Source: Octopus sinensis (Eukaryota). Taken from it: a stretch of 64,000 bases of DNA. The translations under genes were made by a program, and so were the position numbers. The stretch spans positions 1 through 64,000 of the forward strand of contig NW_021833079.1 of assembly GCF_006345805.1 (NCBI RefSeq), given 5' to 3'. Below the pieces are notes generated by a model that searched no databases, was not told where the DNA came from, and worked only from the letters and a program-made list of their open reading frames with translations. This document shows, in pieces, positions 3,926 through 58,200 of this stretch. Every line of letters begins with the position of its first letter. Position 1 is the stretch's first letter.

Positions 3926-4779
3926 TACGACTATGGGTAAAAAAGTGCCAATAACCGGTTAGATTATCTCAAATGCTTATGCGCTATCATTTGTTTTACT
4001 TTTCTTCAAAAATCAATATATTAATGAACATTTGTGAAATAAAAACAAAATAATTGTGGTTTTGTGAAATCAATTTTTTCTGAGATAATATTAAAATAGG
4101 ATAGTTTCACTGATATTATTTGTAATAACTTCAATAATCTTTTTATGGTTCTTTTTTTAATATTTGAACCATTTTTATGTATTAACACGGCCAACCGAAA
4201 ATTGATTCTATTTAACGAAACAAGAAAACCGATTAATATAATCGTAAGACAAGGTTCAATTTAGTTAAGAAACTTTATCGAATCCAAAACACATGATATA
4301 ATGTCAATGAATCCAGAGTAGATTTTCTATTCAACTGACAGTTGATTTTATCTAAAAATGAATTTTATTTTCATTATTGATCATTTCGTGTTCTGATTGA
4401 TTTTTTTAGAATGTATCCTGCTGATAAAATTTTCAATTATCTATAATGTATTGAGAAGAAAGTAAATTAGCTTTATTTTGATTTATTGTTCTTTAAATTG
4501 TATATAGCTTGTTTTTAAAAGATTTAATATTGTTTCAGCAGAAATTTTTTTGAATTAATTCATAAAAGTGGTTGTAGGTACCATGCGGATTTAAATAATT
4601 AAATTATCAAATAATTTAATAAATATTTCAAATGTTGCAACCTAGTGAGCTATTCCAGTTTTTAAATGCTTGGATTTGCATCCAATTCGTCTGTTATTTA
4701 TACAGGTTATTAGGGTGTAATTTAGAGAAAAAAATAATCAAAAAAAACTATTTAATTATTTGTGCGTAAAGTTTTTTTC

Positions 4780-5863
4780 GAGGAAGAAAGGCTACTATGG
4801 CATCTAGCAGTTCGTCAAATGCGTTGTTCAACTCGCTTACTTGTTTTCTCTAGAGAAATTCTAAAAAATTTGTTTTAATTGTTTCTACCAGCAAAGTATA
4901 ATCCCATAAAGTTGGACGAGGTCTCTGTACTTTATTGCGCCTTTTGCACTTCCCCACATTCTCTCTACAGCTTGAGTATGTGCGTGTGTCGTGGAATCGA
5001 TAAAATTTTACCTAAAGAAAGAAAGTATTTAAACAAGTACTTATGATTCACTCAAATATGCGCGCAACGATGGGCATTTTCTGTTAAATATCCTATATTT
5101 TTTTAATAGAAAAAATACATAAAAAATTGAAATCAGAAACTAATAGAGCTATATGGGACCTGGGGGTCAGTCCGACGAAGACGCACTGCGAATCGAGGGG
5201 CAGTTCCAGCGTAGAATAGAGACTGAGACGCGCTGGAAGAGCCAGCTAGCCTCCCTCCGGTCATGCGTCTTCAAGGCAATTTTATGGCGGAGCATACGCA
5301 ACAACCTCTCGGCCTCCTTACCGACCACGCCAGTGGTCTCAAAAGCAAAAGCATTGACCTGTCAGGTACCATCTCCAAAAAGCATTATTTAGTTCCACGG
5401 CACACTCTCCCAAACATCTATTGTTGAAGGAGAATTCGGCTTTAATCATTTTTTTCGCTTTTGAAAACATGGTCTCATATACTTCTACGACTTTCCCTAT
5501 TCCACTTAGACATATACTATTAACTTAGTTAAAACCAATTATTAATTTAAGAGCATTGAGAAGGTATTCAGCACATACCTCTCTGAGCGAGATAGCCCAG
5601 TTGACAATTGTCTGTTCGGTCCAATTCAATTGACGTCTGCACAAAGGTATTATGTTCTTTTCGAAACTCCATAGATAGATAAAACGGATACTAAATGCTA
5701 AAGATATTCTGGAACCTTCAAACCACGTTCCTTGAATACTAATTTTGATAATTCAATTATTTCAATCCGTATGGTGCCTATAACCACTTTTATGAATTAA
5801 TTAAAAAAATTTCATTAATTTAATTCAACACTAAAAAGTGGATGTAGCTAACCTACGAATACC
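4780..5863 (-). mobile_element. Degenerate Merlin (IS1595/ISXO2-like) transposon remnant, interrupted by a CRE-like fragment
   Basis: Remnant frames GTWFEGSRI, TIVNWAISLREVCAEYL, CFLEMVPDRS, TQAVERMWGSAK; terminus ggtattcgtaggttagctacatccactttttag resembles the TIR of the Merlin at 37859-39093. Confidence 0.75.
5150..5372 (-). mobile_element. CRE-like (RLE) non-LTR retrotransposon 3' fragment
   Basis: FAFETTGVVGKEAERLLRMLRHKIALKTHDRREASWLFQRVSVSILRWNCPSI*; close reverse-complement match to 23325-23465. Confidence 0.75.
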
Positions 5864-23150: not shown

Positions 23151-23324
23151 TAATTTTACATTCTACTTTTGTTCAATGCTAATTTGAATTATAGATTTAC
23201 TCATGTGGCGCCGAGTCATCAGACAAAAATTAATATTTAGCTAAAAATAAATAATAAAAATATCGATGGTACGTGCGACAAAAATGATATACAATTTATT
23301 AAAATACAATTTATTTCAGCGATA

Positions 23325-23465
23325 CAATTGCCTTGAAGACCCATGACCGGATGGAGGCTAGCTGGTTCTTCAAACACGACCCGGTCTCTATTCTACGCGG
23401 AAACTGCCTCTCGATCCGCAGTGCGTCTTCGTCGGACTGACTCCCAGGTCCGATGTAGCTCTACT
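23325..23465 (+). mobile_element. CRE-like 3' fragment, same subfamily as 5150-5372
   Basis: Close reverse-complement match to 5150-5285. Confidence 0.75.
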
Positions 23466-23559
23466 AATTTCTTTTTTCATTTCATTAAGAAGAAGGTTGG
23501 CATTTGAAGTTTGTAAAAAAATTTATCAAAATAATGAGATCGATTTTCATGAGATCGAT

Positions 23560-25430
23560 TATGTCTAAATTATCATATTGATTATGTCTATACGTAAAAT
23601 AAAAATCAATTATTCTATAAAAAGAAGGAAGGATAATCATGCGTATTTTTTAGAGACTGAATGCTGGACAAAGTCTTTGCGCAGTTTTCATTTATTTATT
23701 GGAGTTTTATGTATTTTAAATTCCATCACATATGCACATTATATCCGTTATTTTTTTGCTAGTGTTAAGATTAAAATTATTCAATTCATGACTTTAATAA
23801 ATTCAAGGGTAATAGTTCTTTTATAATAATAAAATAAATCATATCAAGAATATGCATCATGATTTTTAAAGTCAAATTTTCATTTATCATATAATTAAAA
23901 AAATGTATACATTCAAAAATGTATCTAAATCACAATTATCCTATAAAAGGAAAAAGGGATAATTACGTGATTTTTTATTTGACCTATAAAGTAGGGGGGC
24001 TAAGACTGCAACCTGCTCGTGGTGCCTCTTGCATACCAATTAATTAAATTGGTTACTAATGGCAGTAAATATTCATACGTTCATCAAATCTTGCGGCGGG
24101 GCATTAATAATATATTTTAAATTCCATCACATATAAAATTGTTTAATTTATGACTTCAATAAATTCAAGCTTAATAGTTTTTTACAATAATATAATAAAT
24201 CATATCGAGAATATGCATCATGATTTCTAAAATCAGATTTTCATTTATCATATGATTAAAAAAATGTATACATTCAAAAATGTATCTAAATCACAATTAT
24301 CCTAGTAAAGGAAAAAGGGATAATTACGTGATTTTTTATTTGACCTATAAAATAGGGGGGCTAAGACTGTAACCTGCTCGTGGTGCCTCTTGCATACCAA
24401 TTAATTAAATTGGTTACTAATGGCAGTCAATATTCATACGTTCATCAATCTTGCGGCGGGGCATTAATATATATTTTAAATTCCATCACATATAAAATTG
24501 TTTAATTTATGACTTCAATAAATTCAAGCTTAATAGTTTTTTACAATAATATAATAAATCATATCGAGAATATGCATCATGATTTTTAAAGTCAGATTTT
24601 CATTTATCATATGATTAAAAAAATGTATACATTCAAAAATGTATCTAAATCACAATTATCCTAGTAAAGGAAAAAGGGATAATTACGTGATTTTTTATTT
24701 GACGTATATTAATAGGGAGGCTAAGACTGCAACCTGCTCGTGGTGCCTCCTGCAAACCAATCAATTAAATTGGTTACTAATGGCAGTCAATATTCATACG
24801 TTCATCAAATCTTGCGGCGGGGCATTAATAATATATTTTAAATTCCATCACATATAAAATTGTTTAATTTATGACTTCAATAAATTCAAGCTTAATAGTT
24901 TTTTACAATAATATAATAAATCATATCGAGAATATGCATCATGATTTCTAAAGTCAGATTTTCATTTATCATATGATTAAAAAAATGTATACATTCAAAA
25001 ATGTATCTAAATCACAATTATCCTATAAAAAGGAAAAAAGGGATAATTATGTGATTTTTTATTTGACGTATATTAATAGGGAGGCTAAGACTGCAACCTG
25101 CTCGTGGTGCCTCCTGCAAACCAATCAATTAAATTGGTTACTAGTGGCAGTCATTATTCATACGTTCATCAAAATAGTTTTGCAAAATTTATTTGACCAT
25201 TAATGAGTGGGTGGGCTAAAAATTGCAACCTGGTCGTGGTATTCCCTGCAAACCAATTATTTCAATTAGTTACTAATAACATTCATCATTTATACAAATA
25301 TAGCTGTCAAAAAAATTGCTGCGTATCTGCGACAATTCTAGTTTATTTCTTTATTAGAGTTTTATGTATTTTAAATTCAATCACATACACACATCATATC
25401 GGTTATTGTCTTTGCTTGTTTTAGATCAAT
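23560..25430. repeat. Tandem array of ~360-bp units: about 4 well-conserved units plus degenerate flanking units
   Basis: Anchor ctaagact recurs at 24000, 24361, 24721 and 25085 (periods 361, 360, 364); degenerate copies near 23600-23750 and 25205-25430. Confidence 0.95.
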
Positions 25431-25852: not shown

Positions 25853-27500
25853 CAGTCCGACCTCTAAATGGGGCACTAAGTGCCTCAAATCAGAGGTTTC
25901 CCCAAAAAAGAGGTTTTTCAAAAAGCTCAATAAATAAAGAAAAAAAACATTATTTTTTAAAATAATCAGTTAATTTTTCTCCATATTTATATTTATTTTT
26001 AATTCCTAATGACACTTTCTTTCTGAATTCATAAAAATCATGAAGAAAATCTGGAATCAAATCAAAGATGTTTGTCTCTAAGTTTTCCATCAAACTTAAA
26101 ATTTGTGATATTGATGGTTCGCAGCTTATATTCTCATAGATATTGGATCATTATCTTCTATTTCATCAAAACATTCATCAATAACATTATTAAATATTTC
26201 TTCAGATGATTCATTTATGCAACTCGAGTCTGATGGAGATTGTCGAAAAACCTTTTGCCAGCAGTTATAAATAATATCCGCAGATACATTATTCCAAGCA
26301 TCTGAGATTATTGTTACCACTTGCCGCAAATTTAATTTGTATAAAAAATCAATTAGACAATTCAAATAATTATCCTTGAAATTTTTAATGATTCCAGCAT
26401 CCAATGGTTGAAGTATTGGTGTCGTATTTTTTGGTAAAAATAAAAAATCAACGTTGCTAAATGTCGATATTTTGTGGCAAGCAGCGTTATCTAATAACAT
26501 TAAGATTTTTCTTTTTTGAATAATCATTTTTTCATTAATTTTTTTGAGCCAGGATATAAAAATGTCTCTTGTCATCCACGCATTTTTGGACGAAGAGTAT
26601 AAAATTCCATAAATTTCGGGAGAAAATTTTTTGAAACATCTAGGATTTCTATATTTTCCGATTATTAATGGTTCAAATTTTTCTCCAGTGTAACTACAGC
26701 ATAGATGAAGAGTAACTTTATCTTTACTCCTTTTAAAGCCCCGTGCCGAATCACCAGTTTTCACGAATGATTTACGTGGGGTAAGTTTGATAAAAAGAGA
26801 AGTTTCGTCACAATTAAAAATGTTCTCCTTTCCATATTGTTCAACTTTGATATTTAATTCTGATAAAAAATTCAAAATTATCGCATGATCAGCAGATGCG
26901 GATTCGCCTGACAATGTTCGGAATTTTAATTCATGCCTCTGCTTGAATTTTCTAACCATCCATTTGAAGCTTTAAACTTGTTTAAGCCCATTCTCGAAAA
27001 AACAGTTAGGGAAATTTTTTTTAAAAGAGTTCCAGAAACTGGAACATTCTGATCCCTTAGACGCTGAAAAATATCAAGGACTTTTTCATCAAATCCGTTT
27101 TTATTTTCACTTAATGATGAGGAAAGAAATCCTTTTTTGATAAATGGAAGAATATTCTTTTTTATACGAAAAATAGTTCCCTTGCTAGTATTGTACATTA
27201 TGGATAATCTCCTCTCAGAATGTTCTTTCTTTAAAAGATGATCAGCAATCTTCAACTTGGTTTCATAATTCAAAGGCATTACACAAGAAATTTAAAATGA
27301 AACGTGTCTTAAAATATTTATTTTTTAAATTGGTATAATTAATTTTATTTAATAAAAAATCAATGACCCAAATAGGAATGTTAAAATTAATTGATTTTTG
27401 ATAATTTGGTTAAAAAAATTTATAATGCCCCAAAACAGAGTTTTCCCCAAAAAAGAGGTGCCCCACCCCTGGAGGTGCGCCCCAATTAGAGGTCGGATTG
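25853..27500 (-). mobile_element. pogo/Tigger transposon, 1648 bp; transposase broken by a 1-nt deletion near 26950
   Basis: TIR cagtccgacctctaaatggggc / (rc) caatccgacctctaattggggc; TA on both flanks; CENP-B HTH plus FNCDET, LLDNAACH, QPLDAGII. Confidence 0.95.
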
Positions 27501-37331: not shown

Positions 37332-37858
37332 TTTATATAAACTAAATTGATTAATAAAAATTAAAATTAAAAATAGCAATTAAATTTTAGATATAATTCT
37401 ATGTACAAAAATTAGTTGCGAATGTAATAAAAAAGCCGATATTAATAACTAAATAAACAATGTAGTCTGAAACAAAGAAGCGCACAACAAAAATTATCAG
37501 CTTGAGAATACGCAATTTATTTATGAGATTATTATTAAAAACAATTTAATTAAAAACTAACAATTAAATCTCTTATAAATTATTTTGTATATTTTAATAT
37601 TAAAAATTAAAGAAATTTCGATTTAATTAAACAAACGGCTAATGATTACAGTGCGACCTCGTATTGGGGAAATTTTTCCCCAATTTTGAGGTTTTCCCCC
37701 AAAAAAAGGTTTTCATTAAATTTAGGTCTCGCCTGTTCGATATCTCTCTTAATAATATAACCGAGACGGATAACTACAATTTTTATTTTTTAATAAAAAA
37801 ATCAGTTAATTTAATCGAGTGTTTTGTTTTTTTTCACATCGAACTCATAATATTTGCT

Positions 37859-39093
37859 GGTACATATGTAGTAGTTGGCGGCCACTTTTTAGCGAATTTA
37901 AAAAAACTATATTTTTTTTGGTGAATAATTACCTTTTTAAATAATATTACTATAAAAAAATTAATTATTTTTATACAAAATTATTAATTATTTTTATTTT
38001 AGTTTTGATTCTGGGGGACAATGTAAGGCAATGCACTCCATGATTGTTTCAAATTCTTTCTTTTTGGCTGTCTGTCGCCAAATGAACTCCGTAAAATAAC
38101 TATTAAGGTGTTGTCTGACTGTTCCCCTTTGTTTTCTATTACGCCATTTGGCGCTACTCCACATTCTAAGGAATAATTATATAATTAGGAAACCTTTCAA
38201 TATGTTGGGTGTGTGCACCCGTAGTTGGATCAACAAAACAATATCTGTGATTCACTTGCAGGTGCTGATATCCTGCATCCTGAAGATCTTTTGTTGAATA
38301 ACCCTTCCAGCAGTCTGATATGAGAATGGTGCCTTCTTCTACATTCTCAAGAATAGCCTTCGTAAGGGTCTTCATTGTTCTGTCAGGTATTGCTTCTAAG
38401 AAGCATGGTTCGTTTCTCTGCAGATTCCGCCGAAAACCCATTGCTCAGGCAACATTCTGCCTCTGTTGTATTTCCTTTTTGAAAAATGACTTTCGTCAAT
38501 TTCCACAATCATTCCTTCACCGCCTATTATATTATAAATTTACGCACACCTATTTTGGATCTCTGACGAGATGTCAATGATAGCATGCAAATTTCACGCA
38601 TGTAGATTGACCAGTCCACGGTTGTATGTGAAGCCCAACCAAGATTTTCCATGCATATCTCCATAGAAGATATATTTTTTGCCCACAGGTAGACAAACCG
38701 GATTATCTTCGAATGGTACTTTGGTTCCTGCTAACCACGTTCCTGTTGAGTTTTAATGATATAAATACCAGTTTTTAGACTCGATTTACTTCGACAGCCC
38801 CTTCTGTAGCAATTCCAAGCCGGAGAGCTGCCAATGTTTAAAGTCATTTGGTGTCCGTTGCGACACACTTTTTTTTTGGGATGATTCCTCTGGATTGCAT
38901 GAAATTGATAGCTTCTGACATATTTGTGGGTAGATTGAATAGATTGACCTCACTTCTCATTTAAATTAAAGTAGCGTGGGATTTTATTATTTTTATATTG
39001 TATTATTTTTAATTATATATTTTTTTTAACTAAAAAAAATATAGTTTTTTTAAAATTCGCTAAAAAGTGGCCGCCAACTACTACATATGTACC
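37859..39093 (-). mobile_element. Full-length Merlin transposon (1235 bp); transposase 38960-37994 with three microintrons and two 1-nt frameshifts
   Basis: 41-bp perfect TIR ggtacatatgtagtagttggcggccactttttagcgaattt (about 60 bp with one indel); perfect 8-bp TSD tatttgct; [34 protein letters not shown]. Confidence 0.95.
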
Positions 39094-40056
39094 TATTTGC
39101 TTTGAATCTGAATAGATCAAGTACATTTTCCGGAGTCTCTTGCTTAATAACATTTAGCAGCATTGTGAATGCGCATTCCGCATTGTTTATAACTTGTTGA
39201 TCATCCAAATGTTCCATAAATGTTCGCTGCAGTCCTCTTCATCACTACTGTTATCATCCTAGAAACTCTCCAAAATCGTATTTTCCACAATATCGGAATT
39301 AATCAGACTTTCTTCGATGTCCTCTTTTTCCCGACAGTCATATTCCAAAGCTTTTTCAAAGCAATGTTGTATTGAAGTGTCTGTAATCTCGTCCCATGCC
39401 AATTTCGAACATGAAATAGCATCCAATATTGTGATTCCCTTTATTGCTTCATCTATTTGCCCTGCAGGATTTTTTATCATAGATAATTGTTTTCATAATC
39501 CAGTTATTAAAATGATTCTTAAATGCCTTTATTATCCCTTGGTCACATGGCTGAATTAAGGAACTTGTATTTTTGGAAAAAATATTACGTCGACGTTTGA
39601 AAGTTGAGAGAAACAGCATGACAAGTTGCATTGTCAATAACAATGCTATTTTCCTTCTTTTCTCTCTCATTTCCTCGTTAAATCGAGATAACCAATTTTC
39701 AAAAATATTTTTTGTCATCCAGGCTTTGCACGAAGCATCATATTCAATGCCAATTTCTCTCAGATTCACACCTTTTATACTCTTGGTGACTTCGTACGCC
39801 CATTATAAGCGGTTTATATTTTTCTCCTGTGTAACTGCAACACAAAAGAAGTGTCATACGTTCTTTTCTTATTTTATGTCCGCTGTGTGACTCATTTTTT
39901 TCAACAAAACTCCTTTTGGAAACAGCTTTATAAAATAATGCAGTTTATCACAGTTGAAAATGTTTTCTCCCCCATAGTTTTCAAGCAAATCATTGAAAGT
40001 TGATTGGAAGTTTTCCGCACCTTCTTTATCAGCTGATCGTGATTCGCCATGTAATA

Positions 40057-40658
40057 TGTCGCGAGCGCAGCGAGCACGCGAGCGCGACGCGCACATTGAC
40101 AGCTAACAAGCCTGTTCATCAACAAATATATTTATTAAATTATTTAAAATTTTAACATGATTTAAAATTAAAATTGAAATAACTTAAGTTTCCATTGAAT
40201 CCCATAAAATAATTATAAGTAGACCTTAATAGAAAAAGTAAAATCAATGAATACTGAACGCTAATTTTGTTTAGGTTGTGAGGGGGGTAATAATTTGACA
40301 AATCTCATTGCTATTTTTTCGTTTTAATCTCTAAAATTAGGTCTTCTAATCAAAAATGAACTGTGCAGACAGGCTTGCTCCTTCAGAAGATTCTTGTTTT
40401 GACATTTTTATAAATTATGAAGCATTTAGATTTTTCTCATTATTCTAAAATCAATTATAAATTTAAAATATTTTTTTATTTATGAAATCGGTTTTAAAGC
40501 TCATTCTGCTTTGGCATCGATTTTAATTTTTGTTATCGAATATATTTAATCCCAAATACAAGCCTGGGTATTTGTCAATTTATAGATTTTTGTGATTGAT
40601 CGGATCTAGAAATTGAGTGGTTGCTCGCTGCGCTCGCGTGCTCGCTGCGCTCGCGACA
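40057..40658. mobile_element. 602-bp non-autonomous TIR element (MITE) with TGT...ACA ends
   Basis: 29-bp perfect TIR tgtcgcgagcgcagcgagcacgcgagcgc; taata duplicated on both sides; removing it restores pogo codons IKFRI|LHGES. Confidence 0.9.
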
Positions 40659-41479
40659 TAATATTCTGAATTTTATTTCGAATTGTTTCTTAAATCTGTA
40701 AAGCCATCCATAGAAGCAGTGAAATCATGATTTGAATTTCTATACGCAATTTTACGTGCAATAAGCTTTAAGGTTGGCCCATTAATTGGAAAACCTTTCG
40801 ACCTGAGATTACGAAAAATCTCGTAAACTTGGGCATTCAATTCGTATCCAATTGTCCCTTCGAATGTTGAGAAACCTTGAGCTAAGATTCCTTCCCTTTT
40901 CTTTTTTAGTCGGTATAGCATTCCTTTAGAGATGTTAAATTCTTCACAAATCATTTTGTCCTTATGACTGTATATCCTTGCAAATTCTGATCTTTTCACT
41001 TTGATTTAGTTTTCTAGGTATTGGCTTTCTAAAATTTATAAAATAACTTTAAAAATTGATAATTTCAGTTTTTTACCAGGTTAATTAGCTAACTAACTAA
41101 GTTACCAGGTTAAATAAATTTTAAAATTATTGATTACAAATTTGGAAAAACAGGTTACAATAAATAAATAATAATAAATCAAAAATTATACAAATATATT
41201 AATGAATCGTTTATGATAATATAAAATTTTTCCCCGGTAGGGGGTTTATTTCATTAAAAATCATCGTATTTTATAGGGATGGCAAAAATATTTCCCCAAA
41301 ACCAAGGTTTTCCCCAAAAAAGAGGGTTTCCCCGCTACTTGGTTTTCCCCAATTCGAAGTCGCACTGTATAACATAAAAAATAAAATTACCTTTAATAAG
41401 AAAAAAACCACTGGTAAAATTAATTAAAAATAACATCTCCCGGCGAAAGGATCTCCTTATTGTTGATTTTTGAATCCTC

Positions 41480-52037: not shown

Positions 52038-52654
52038 TTAAAGAACAGAACAACAATGATTGCGTTTATCAGACTTTTCGATACGTTTATTTGCCCTGAT
52101 TAACCTCACAAGTTCAATAAATGCCTAAATCACATTCAACAAGCCAGATCAACCCTATCGACATTCTGAGCTGTTTTTGCTGAAGTTTCAAAAACAGGAA
52201 CATTGAGAGTATCTGGAATCTTCCATGATGATTTAAGGTCACATTTATTCCCGACTATAACAACTGGCATAGTTTTAGGACTGTGATATTGCTGGATTCG
52301 GGAGTAAAGAGATTGAGCCCATTCAAAGGTCTGTGGTTCTGCCAATGAGTAGACCAGTAGAAATCCATCTCCCTTCCTCATGTACATCTCATAGACACTA
52401 TAAAATTGTTCGGTCCCGGCAGTGTCGAGGATCTCGAGGCAGCATTCTCGATTGTCAATTACTATAATAGATTTATTTAAATATAATTATTTACTTTTTT
52501 TCCTGCAATAAGAATCTTCTATTGTCGGGTCGTATTTATGAACAAATATTTCTTGTGTAAATCGAATGGTCTGTAAAAGTTTAAACATAATTACGACCAG
52601 TGCACTTTTCCCAACACCTCCACTTCCCATGACCACAATATTATGCTCTTCCAT
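52038..52654 (-). CDS. RAP: Rap-subfamily small GTPase; 3 introns (27, 33, 29 nt)
   Basis: [27 protein letters not shown] (Thr61, Rap signature), GNKCDL, ETSAK, C-terminal CCSVL CAAX box. Confidence 0.88.
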
Positions 52655-55282: not shown

Positions 55283-58200
55283 CTAAGTTTCTTTCTTTTT
55301 GATGTTGTGGACACACTTATTTGGTGATAAATCTTTTTTATTTTTTTTCCAGTACAAGAGTCTTTTCCCAAGGTTCAACTTTGTTTTTATAAGAAACAAG
55401 CATGCTCTCAAGGGTTTTTTTATAGTAAGTAATTGAATGTATGCATGTATTCTCTTACTGATATTAAGCAAACGTGCATATTGTAGAAATTTTTGGATTG
55501 AGTCCATCCCATTTTAGCACAATTGACGGAGCCGACCCCGAGTGAGTGGCAGGCACCGAAAGCGAAGAACCTGAGGAAGAAGGCAATGCCGACACTTCCA
55601 TCTCCACTTGATGCGTCGGATATCTTGCCAACTCCAGCCGAGCCAATACAGAAAAAGCCCCCTTTACGAAAACGGGCGGCGCTCAGGCACGAGGGCAGCC
55701 GCGTTCCAAATCAAGTGTGAGCGTGATAACGCTTATCAATGCCCGGTCTCTCATGAGACGGGCAACGGAGCTGAGGTCCCTTCTGACCTTGGCAAAGACA
55801 GATGTCCTAATTGTGAACGAAACCAAAATGAAAGGGCCTCGGCAGATCAAATTTGAAGGCTATAGATCCCTCCACATTCCATGGAGGTCGGGGGCGATTG
55901 CGGGAACGGGATCCTCGCTTTACTACAAAGCCGACATTGTTGTAAAGAACTTGAGGATCCTTGAAGAGAACCGATGCGAACTGATCGCACTAGAACTCCT
56001 AACTTCCATTGGATGGATAACAATCGGTGGAATGTACTCGAAGGACCTCAGAACTACCCTGAAGTGATCAGGAAGTTCTTTGAGGATAATGAGATGGCCA
56101 TTCTTGCGGGAGATCTCAACGCCAAAAATACCGCTTATGGATGCGAGACCTCTAACCAAGATGGTCGGGCTTTACTGAGGATCGCAAGGAAATATGACCT
56201 TAATGTCTGGACTTCTGAGGAACTTAATCATTTCTGCTTCAGTGGAGGTGATCGCCTCGGACTATTTCTTTCTTCCGCGTCTGTGAGCCTTTTTGCGACA
56301 GGCCCCGGATAGAAATGCGGACTGGGAGTGACCATCTGCCCCAATCAATGTTGTTGCGGAACATCTACGGAGTTGGTATCAGATCTCTTCACGGGATACG
56401 ACTTGTCCCCTGTGCAATGGCCCATGTTCGCCATATTCATGGGTGCAGCTTTGGAACCTCTCTCCCACATGCATCTGTCCACGAGTGAAAGTATTGATCA
56501 TCTTGATATGGCCATACGAAAGCATGTGGTGGCCTTTCTGGACAGATTCGCTTCTAAAAAACATATGAAATCCCAGGGATCTTGCGCGAAGAGGTCCGAA
56601 ACTAGACTATCTGAGCTAGTCAGAGACAAGGCGCGACTGGAAAGCAAAAGAAGGAGGTGTTTTGAATCGGAGGACTCTGGAAGTCTAAAGGCCCGAATCA
56701 ACACCCTGAAGAGTCGGATCGACGAGCTGACTAAAGCTAACACAGATGAGGCATGGAAGAGAGAATGCTTAAAACTCAACAAGAAAAATCCTAAATTCTG
56801 GAAACTATACAAAATAATGAACGGGACGGAAGCGAAAGGAGAAGAAATCATTCTTAAATCGGTGGATGGAGGCTTTGTTCCTACTGAGGAAGTCCCGGAG
56901 GTCTTCCGCCAGCAGCTAGCAGGGATTCAGGAGGTGGACCCTTCGTCTATCCTGCCTCTGAAAATATTCGAGGAGTCGACCCGAAATTCCCGCTCAAAAC
57001 TTGTTTTGGATGGACCCTTGTGCAGAGAAATAACCACGGAAGAGACGTTCGAAGCAATCAGAGGTTGCAAGAACAACGCTCCTGGATTTGACTTCATCCC
57101 TATGGAGGTATTCAAGAAGGCACCCGGATGCTTGCTTCGTATTCTGGTGAAACTATTCAATGCCAGTTGGGACAATGGTCACGTCCCACCTAGCTGGAAC
57201 GAACAATCGTCCGAATGATCCCAAAACCTGGAAAACCAAATACGCAGGCAGGAAGTTATAGGCCAATTAGCCTTATCTGCACAACGTCGAGGATAATGGA
57301 AAGAATTATTTTCAATCGTTTATCGGCTTACGTGGAACAAAATAATATACTCGCGGAGGAACAGTGGGGTTTTAGACCTGGTCGATCAACCGGTCACTGT
57401 TTCTCGCTTCTTGAGGAAGAACTGACTCGGGCCAAACAACATAAAGCCTGCCTAACGGCGGTCTGCCTGGACGTCTGCAAGGCCTTTGACAGTGTCTGGC
57501 ACTTGGGGTTGTTAGATAAAGTAGCGGAGTTGGGTGCTGGGCGAAAAACTGTCGGATGGCTTAAGGACTTCTTGTGCGAGAGAAAATCGTTCATTCGTTG
57601 TGGAAATTTGCTATCGAAGGCCGTGAATCTGAGGAGAGGTGTTCCTCAGGGATCGGTTCTCAGCCCCTTGCTCTTTAATATATTTCTGGCCGACGTCCCG
57701 AAACCACATTTTCCTACGAGCAGACTAATTATCTACGCAGACGATATCTTGGTTACGGATGTCTCGACGTGGGGACCCCGACACAGAAGAAGGCTGTCCT
57801 GGAGCAGACTAGAACCGTACTTGGAGGAACTTGAAATCTGGTGCAATGGTAAGGCTTGAATCTCGCTCTGGACAAAAGTACCATTTGTTGGATTTCAATG
57901 GGTCGTGACAAAAAACCGACTTTCGAGGATTATGGGAACCTGATTATATCGAAGAACCTACGTTACCTGGAGTAACTATAGACCCCACCGGGTCATACAA
58001 ACCCCATGTGCATGCAAAGCGGAAACAAGGAGCGAAAATCCTAAAAGGACTGAGGCGTTTTTGTCTGAGCGCAGAAACGTTTCTACACATCTACCAGACT
58101 TGTGTTCAGCCACTAATAATCTATGGCTCGGAGGGCTAGTACCAAACTGATGAAAGGGACCTTCTAATCGCCAAACTCGAAAAAACCAGACGATTTGCCA

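Follow-up and report, generated by a model that had tools for sequence, protein, structure and literature searches.

The window, the whole 64,000-nucleotide stretch analysed here (VCDQ01007963.1:1-64000 of the Octopus sinensis assembly GCA_006345805.1), contains a structurally complete DNA transposon of the Merlin/IS1595 type, 1,235 bp long and lying on the minus strand (37859-39093; Table 1). Its terminal inverted repeats (TIRs) are ~105 bp long each and 86% identical over 106 nt (blastn of the element against the window). The outermost 41 nt are identical between the two arms and start GGTACATATG, with a terminal 5'-GG; Merlin elements are defined by TIRs of 24-462 bp with terminal 5'-GG (PMC8101967). 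Within the window, the 20-mer GTAGTAGTTGGCGGCCACTT of the TIR is present only at the two element ends. A perfect target site duplication (TSD) of 8 bp, within the 8 or 9 bp expected of Merlin, flanks the element and is the trace of a past insertion. The target was a decayed pogo/Tc5-like transposon, represented by ORF fragments with pogo DDE motifs. When the Merlin flanks are joined, the C-terminal frame of the pogo-like element runs on across the junction (...LDLFRFKANIMSSM, followed by a stop). Merlin jumped into this older element, duplicating 8 bp of the target.

Table 1. Features of the window, in window coordinates; a slash marks a junction in the translated sequence.
Feature	Position	Strand	Details
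TSD copy 1	37851-37858		TATTTGCT on + strand; same 8-mer on both flanks
TIR, 3' end of Merlin as transcribed	37859-37961	-	outer end GGTACATATGTAGTAGTTGGCGGCCAC...
Exon 4 (predicted)	37994-38165	-	RMWSSAKWRNRK...PPESKLK, then TAA stop; translation and alignment to relatives
Intron 3 (predicted)	38166-38193	-	28 nt, GT..AG, phase 2, HIE/R, GC 0.21, GTTTCCTAATTATATAATTATTCCTTAG
Exon 3 (predicted)	38194-38523	-	ends ...HTQHIE; holds D138 and D199
Intron 2 (predicted)	38524-38549	-	26 nt, GT..AG, phase 1, KI/GG, GC 0.23, GTGTGCGTAAATTTATAATATAATAG
Exon 2 (predicted)	38550-38742	-	GTWLAGTKVPFE...SRQRSKI
Intron 1 (predicted)	38743-38768	-	26 nt, GT..AG, phase 1, KT/GTW, GC 0.23, GTATTTATATCATTAAAACTCAACAG
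Exon 1 (predicted)	38769-38960	-	MRSEVNLF...IIPKKK, then zinc-finger part CRNGHQM...SLKT; N-termini of relatives align
TIR, 5' end of Merlin as transcribed	38989-39093	-	blastn arm and terminal identity
TSD copy 2	39094-39101		TATTTGCT
Decayed pogo/Tc5-like transposon, target of the Merlin insertion	39102-41005	-	HTH_Tnp_Tc5 match at 40676-41005
Second Merlin copy, decayed, without exon 1	4543-5812	-	tblastn; 69-nt inverted ends, 90% identity
pogo/Tc5-like transposase	26129-27291	-	DDE_1 at 1e-35; ~400 codons, one frameshift, no intron
Ras/Rap-like gene, introns			27, 33, 29 nt; GT..AG; homology-guided mapping
Serine palmitoyltransferase (SPT)-like gene, introns			24, 29 nt; GT..AG; homology-guided mapping
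PKN-like kinase gene, introns			27, 25, 25, 24, 26, 27, 30 nt; GT..AG; homology-guided mapping

Between the TIRs lies a transposase gene that runs from an ATG at 38960 to a TAA stop at 37994-37996. Its predicted spliced and frame-corrected product is 295 aa long, with stop codons at 0/295 positions across the four exons. This product matches the Pfam domain DDE_Tnp_IS1595 (PF12762) at 1.1e-16 (61.6 bits, cut-off 27) over profile positions 6-152 of 153, has 820 homologues carrying the same domain (best 6e-105) and is ~50% identical to ~290-aa Merlin transposases over 97-98% of its length. The catalytic signature is kept (D138 in VEIDES, D199 in ISDCW, E238 in HIE and K245 in SAKW), with K245 seven residues after E238, as in the IS1595-type DDE + K/R signature. 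In an alignment of 16 sequences (the 295-aa product and 15 homologues), D138, D199 and K245 occupy invariant columns; the E238 column shows Glu in most relatives, with exceptions in P0005 (K) and P0097 (gap). Nearer the N-terminus, a putative zinc finger is outlined by C32, H36 and C50, which are invariant in the alignment, and by C55, which is nearly so; there was no match to Pfam Zn_Tnp_IS1595 at E <= 0.01. The product retains 50 of the 53 columns that are invariant among its relatives, the exceptions being K/R, I/V and L/I exchanges, and is no worse in this respect than intact relatives, which show 0-3 such differences when each is left out in turn.

According to the summary of Feschotte (2004) in PMC8101967, the Merlin superfamily is characterized by a ~290-aa transposase, a ~1.2-kb element, a zinc finger, 5'-GG TIRs and an 8-bp TSD. 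The element in the window shares the DDE_Tnp_IS1595 domain, the transposase length, the 5'-GG TIRs, the 8-bp TSD and the ~1.2-kb size, and may share the zinc finger. With the domain, the catalytic residues, the GG-initiated TIRs and the 8-bp TSD all present, the locus is, judged by these sequence features, a member of the Merlin superfamily.

The transposase frame is interrupted by three short insertions. The earlier note had read them as GT-AG introns of 26, 26 and 28 nt; all three are located exactly at the coordinates it gave, on the minus strand, with the junction peptides it named (KT/GTWL, KI/GG and HIE/RMWSSAKW). It had also held that their removal restores conserved IS1595/ISXO2-type homology, which is what the gap-free junctions and the PF12762 match of 1.1e-16 indicate: once the insertions are taken out, the 16-sequence alignment runs without gaps across KT/GTW, KI/GGEG and HIE/RMW. 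Intron 3 directly follows the codon of the catalytic Glu. No insertion has a length divisible by three, and each one, when read through, brings a stop inside or just past it: retention of intron 1 gives KTGIYIIKTQQERG and a stop, of intron 2 KIGVRKFII and two stops, and of intron 3 IERFPNYIIIP and a stop. As any retained intron shifts the frame or hits a stop within a few codons, no transposase would be made without splicing.

The composition and the ends of the insertions also fit introns. Their GC fraction is 0.21-0.23 (mean 0.22), compared with 0.41 in the exons. The joint frequency of GT and AG at fixed ends is 0.0023 in this window, and the chance of three such insertions is ~1e-7, even with a few sliding positions allowed per site. 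The GT..AG ends of all three, together with a frame and a homology restored to the codon, argue that the insertions are not due to chance, and the transposase gene looks like one of four exons and three predicted U2-type GT-AG microintrons. Exons 2-4 lie in different DNA frames and are conserved only if read as spliced, an indirect sign that the spliced product has been under selection ever since the introns were gained. In a collection of 5.8 billion proteins there was no near-identical full-length protein of the kind that a spliced transcript would give, the best being 52% identical.

The description of the insertions as host-type in size holds as well, since 26, 26 and 28 nt lie in the middle of the 24-33 nt band of the host introns in the same window (n = 12). 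These 12 introns come from three genes (Table 1), have a median length of 27 nt and a mean GC of 0.30, and are all GT..AG. They were mapped by homology, because an ORF-bridging scan for host intron lengths was too noisy, GT..AG not rising above control dinucleotides. The host 5' splice sites begin with GTT in 7 of the 12 introns and with GTA in 2; the published 5' splice-site logo of Dicyema japonicum is described as 'GTa', and, small as the sample is (n = 12), the GTT-rich sites seen here may indicate a different dicyemid species. Intron 1 of the Ras-like gene (52571-52597, minus strand) is 27 nt long, a multiple of three, and has no in-frame stop; its retention would place nine extra residues in the P-loop region and cause no truncation.

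Such lengths bear on the identity of the host. Ordinary animal introns are rarely shorter than ~50 nt; among animals, introns below 30 bp have been reported only for myxobolid myxozoans and D. japonicum, which is the only non-myxozoan animal listed with them (PMC13644364). D. japonicum inhabits the renal sac of O. sinensis and has an AT-rich genome, with a GC content of 36.7%, 49% repeats and a mean intron length of 38 bp (PMC6736024). The protein of the SPT-like exon (P0121) is encoded on two contigs of GCA_006345805.1. Its best foreign matches reach 54-57% identity only; those with names come from molluscs, flatworms and a brachiopod, and none is a near-identical sequence from a cephalopod. 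Given the 24-33-nt introns, the lack of a near-identical cephalopod match to the SPT-like protein and the life of D. japonicum in O. sinensis, the host is, on gene structure and context, most likely a dicyemid mesozoan whose DNA was carried into the octopus assembly. A sister contig of 151 kb (VCDQ01001888.1) is, at its positions 121318-141947, collinear with window positions 7613-28242 at 98-99.9% identity; over these 20.6 kb there are 86 mismatches and 20 indels. Its probable source is the other haplotype or another individual of the parasite population. The predicted Merlin introns resemble dicyemid host microintrons (PMC6736024, PMC13644364) in length class, in GT..AG ends with little further consensus and in AT-richness, and differ from them in lying in a mobile element that has intron-free relatives.

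We regard the following as the best explanation, and a likely one: a 1,235-bp Merlin has inserted into a pogo-like element, its transposase gene is split by three host-type microintrons, and its host is a dicyemid. In its proposed working, the host spliceosome would excise the three introns from the transposase pre-mRNA, and the spliced mRNA would be translated into a ~295-aa protein that carries a putative Cys/His zinc finger at its N-terminus and a DDE(K) core (D138, D199, E238 and K245). This transposase would attach to the GG-initiated TIRs and mobilize the element. The introns would have been added to an ancestrally intron-free Merlin gene, and both the time and the place of their gain are what we infer from the comparisons that follow.

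The closest relatives lack introns at the three sites: the frame is uninterrupted over them in 116, 120 and 120 of the best 120 relatives, and the genes from Strongyloides ratti (873 nt for 290 aa) and Macrosiphum euphorbiae (864 nt for 287 aa) carry no intron in their DNA, each being 3 x aa + 3 nt long. The Oratosquilla model has one annotated intron of 62 nt at another site (NYLREV/CAE), and in the Trichonephila model 79 nt of coding sequence are left out, which looks like an annotation work-around. All the relatives examined lack introns at the three codon positions. Bacterial IS1595, ISXO2 and IS1016 elements share with the window element the Pfam domain, the 8-bp TSD and the DDE + K/R signature with K seven residues after Glu; the window element differs from them in residing in an animal nuclear genome, whereas bacterial IS1595-family elements, to our knowledge, cannot carry spliceosomal introns. 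Merlin is thought to derive from elements of that bacterial family (PMC8101967). As far as these sequence data reach, the intron-free state is ancestral for the clade, with the qualification that a protein collection built largely from ORF calls under-represents interrupted genes. Because the closest relatives read through all three sites, the introns appear to be additions to an ancestrally intron-free gene; as such they would be datable additions and not shortened ancestral introns. The split of the gene by three 26-28-nt introns also sets the element apart from its closest relatives, the best 120 of which are nearly all uninterrupted there. A 2021 survey of Merlin across eukaryotes makes no mention of dicyemids, introns or exons.

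The collections searched yielded no further copy of the same family. By protein, exon 3 together with the read-through tail of intron 3 had no match exceeding 66% identity; by exact look-up, six ORFs of the element had no match. In a search for the allelic site on the sister contig, eleven neighbouring ORFs had no database record. Gene calls are very sparse on this assembly (one per 20 kb on the sister contig), and such missing matches say little about copy number. The TIR 20-mer matched one sequence in metagenome_contigs, a bacterial contig rich in GC, and this match was rejected as due to chance. The closest relative (P0001) was considered as an intronless version of the same family and rejected: it lies on a 1,048-nt contig with unrelated TIRs and so belongs to a different family.

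The window itself holds a second, decayed Merlin copy (Table 1), which has stops and frameshifts and a GC-rich repeat inserted at ~5160-5345. Its homology starts exactly at GTWFEG (5731), right after an acceptor-like ...TCAAG, at the place where an acceptor of intron 1 would be expected. A 31-nt GT..AG segment at 5505-5535 occupies the KI/G codon and the phase of intron 2, one extra base being needed for the frame. HTQAVERMWGSAK reads without a break: the HTQxVE/RMW site has no insertion, and intron 3 is absent. Further GT..AG segments are found at 5012-5040 (29 nt, VNHK/Y), 17 codons upstream of the intron-3 site, and, as a candidate that is out of frame by 1 nt, at 4861-4888 (28 nt, YLL/EF). 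Two intron positions thus appear, from these alignments, to be common to both Merlin copies and the third not, with one or two others in the second copy. The second copy is no more similar to the first than to intronless relatives, ranking 25 of 121 by score. Since the two copies group as sisters in 14 of 100 bootstraps (neighbour-joining, 198 columns), the common positions are not simply readable as shared descent; they may stem from common ancestry, from independent gain at preferred sites or from exchange among resident elements. The difference in the third intron points to intron turnover within resident Merlins.

The same comparison bears on a different history, in which the introns predate dicyemid residence: they would belong to a Merlin sublineage of an older host and would merely have been shortened after arrival. 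The positions before GTW and at KI/G are apparently occupied in a second copy that stands no closer to the first than it does to intronless relatives, as an older origin would allow, and intron-bearing relatives are under-represented where a protein database favours uninterrupted ORFs. We nevertheless consider this history unlikely. The relatives examined are all free of introns at the three sites, those of S. ratti and Macrosiphum have none anywhere, the 62-nt Oratosquilla intron lies elsewhere and the gap in Trichonephila looks like a product of its annotation; the third intron, which differs between the two copies in the window, argues for turnover in resident elements. We retain the reading that microintrons were added to an ancestrally intron-free Merlin gene.

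Other repeats of the window give the setting of these two copies. Microintrons in all DNA transposons of the genome were considered and rejected: the pogo-like copy at 26.1-27.3 kb is intron-free over ~400 codons, and microintrons are therefore not general in the DNA transposons of this genome. A GC-rich short repeat of ~150-190 nt, which may be a SINE-like element, occurs at 5140-5350, inside the decayed Merlin, and at 23316-23466 (87% identical). A tandem array at 23772-25173 consists of 3.9 copies of a 361-nt unit with 96% matches. A LINE-type reverse transcriptase (RVT_1 at 6e-33) is encoded at 55600-58000 (plus strand), where the GC fraction of the window is highest (0.47, compared with ~0.32 overall). 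Screening against Rfam gave no hits anywhere in the window.

The first Merlin copy carries three 1-nt frame disruptions. One, at ~38707 (PFE/IIRF), falls in exon 2; a second, at ~38406 (CRETN/CFLEA), is a 1-nt deletion in exon 3; the third, a 1-nt deletion in the A9 run at 38869-38877 in exon 1, shifts the reading from the MRSEV...GIIPKKK frame into the zinc-finger frame CRNGHQM. The earlier note had counted two frameshifts; both of its sites were right, and the one in the A9 run had been missed. With three frame-breaking indels, the copy as assembled cannot make a transposase. Indels apart, its coding sequence shows no decay, and three indels with essentially no substitutions could mean that the pseudogene is very young or that the indels are errors of a long-read assembly. 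PacBio reads underlie this assembly, the mapped host exons (~2.7 kb) have no frameshifts, and the sister contigs are ~1 indel per kb apart. To move, this copy would require a helper or, should the indels be assembly errors, their correction.

The three frameshifts would suit the notion that the insertions are junk in a dead copy and that their GT..AG ends and the restored frame are coincidental. This is very improbable: all three insertions have GT..AG ends (3/3, at a joint frequency of 0.0023 each), fall in the host band of 24-33 nt, are AT-rich relative to the exons and are cleanly excised to the codon, and the lack of substitution decay in the exons does not fit a copy old enough to have gathered three insertions of 26-28 nt. 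It is scarcely credible that the locus has ceased to be a transposon and that the host has domesticated this Merlin as a gene of its own, with introns of the ordinary host kind. Good conservation of the coding sequence and the host-type introns would fit, yet the GG-initiated TIRs are intact, the 8-bp TSD is perfect, and the gene is nested inside another transposon and bears three frame-breaking indels.

Intron-bearing transposase genes as such are already known, among them those of the P element, Ac and Minos. As in these and in the CACTA families, the transposase would be made only after host splicing, which here is predicted; their introns are of ordinary length for their hosts, whereas those of the window element belong to the class below 30 nt. 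In CACTA families, exon numbers vary and intron gain and loss among related families is documented (PMC4158355), and the Merlins described here likewise vary in exon/intron structure between related families. What is new is a Merlin lineage in an (inferred) dicyemid with a transposase gene split by microintrons. That a resident gene drifts towards the intron style of its host is expected, and the finding leaves the view of how Merlin works unchanged and adds no new mechanism. It also matters for the mining of the octopus assembly that a contig of at least 136 kb, with its sister contig, is filed as Octopus sinensis and is apparently dicyemid.

In a genome whose introns are nearly all shorter than ~35 nt, a gene to which introns were added bears on how microintrons originate, whether inserted small or shrunk. 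Because ordinary animal introns are rarely shorter than ~50 nt, it is reasonable to suppose that the introns may bind the element to hosts able to splice microintrons and so impede its horizontal escape; that an element needs a spliceosome accepting 26-nt introns is a testable idea about the host restriction of DNA transposons. More tentatively, and as a proposal we would not yet bet on, we suggest that dicyemid Merlins gain and lose microintrons in place (two positions apparently common to the two copies and at least two not), so that their introns would be datable and "born small" and, at 26-28 nt too short for the spliceosomes of ordinary animals, would lock the transposase to microintron-splicing hosts. 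If true, in-place gain and loss would provide a record of intron creation in the bilaterian lineage with the shortest introns, and the microintron lock would be an intrinsic barrier to horizontal escape, the cephalopod host included.
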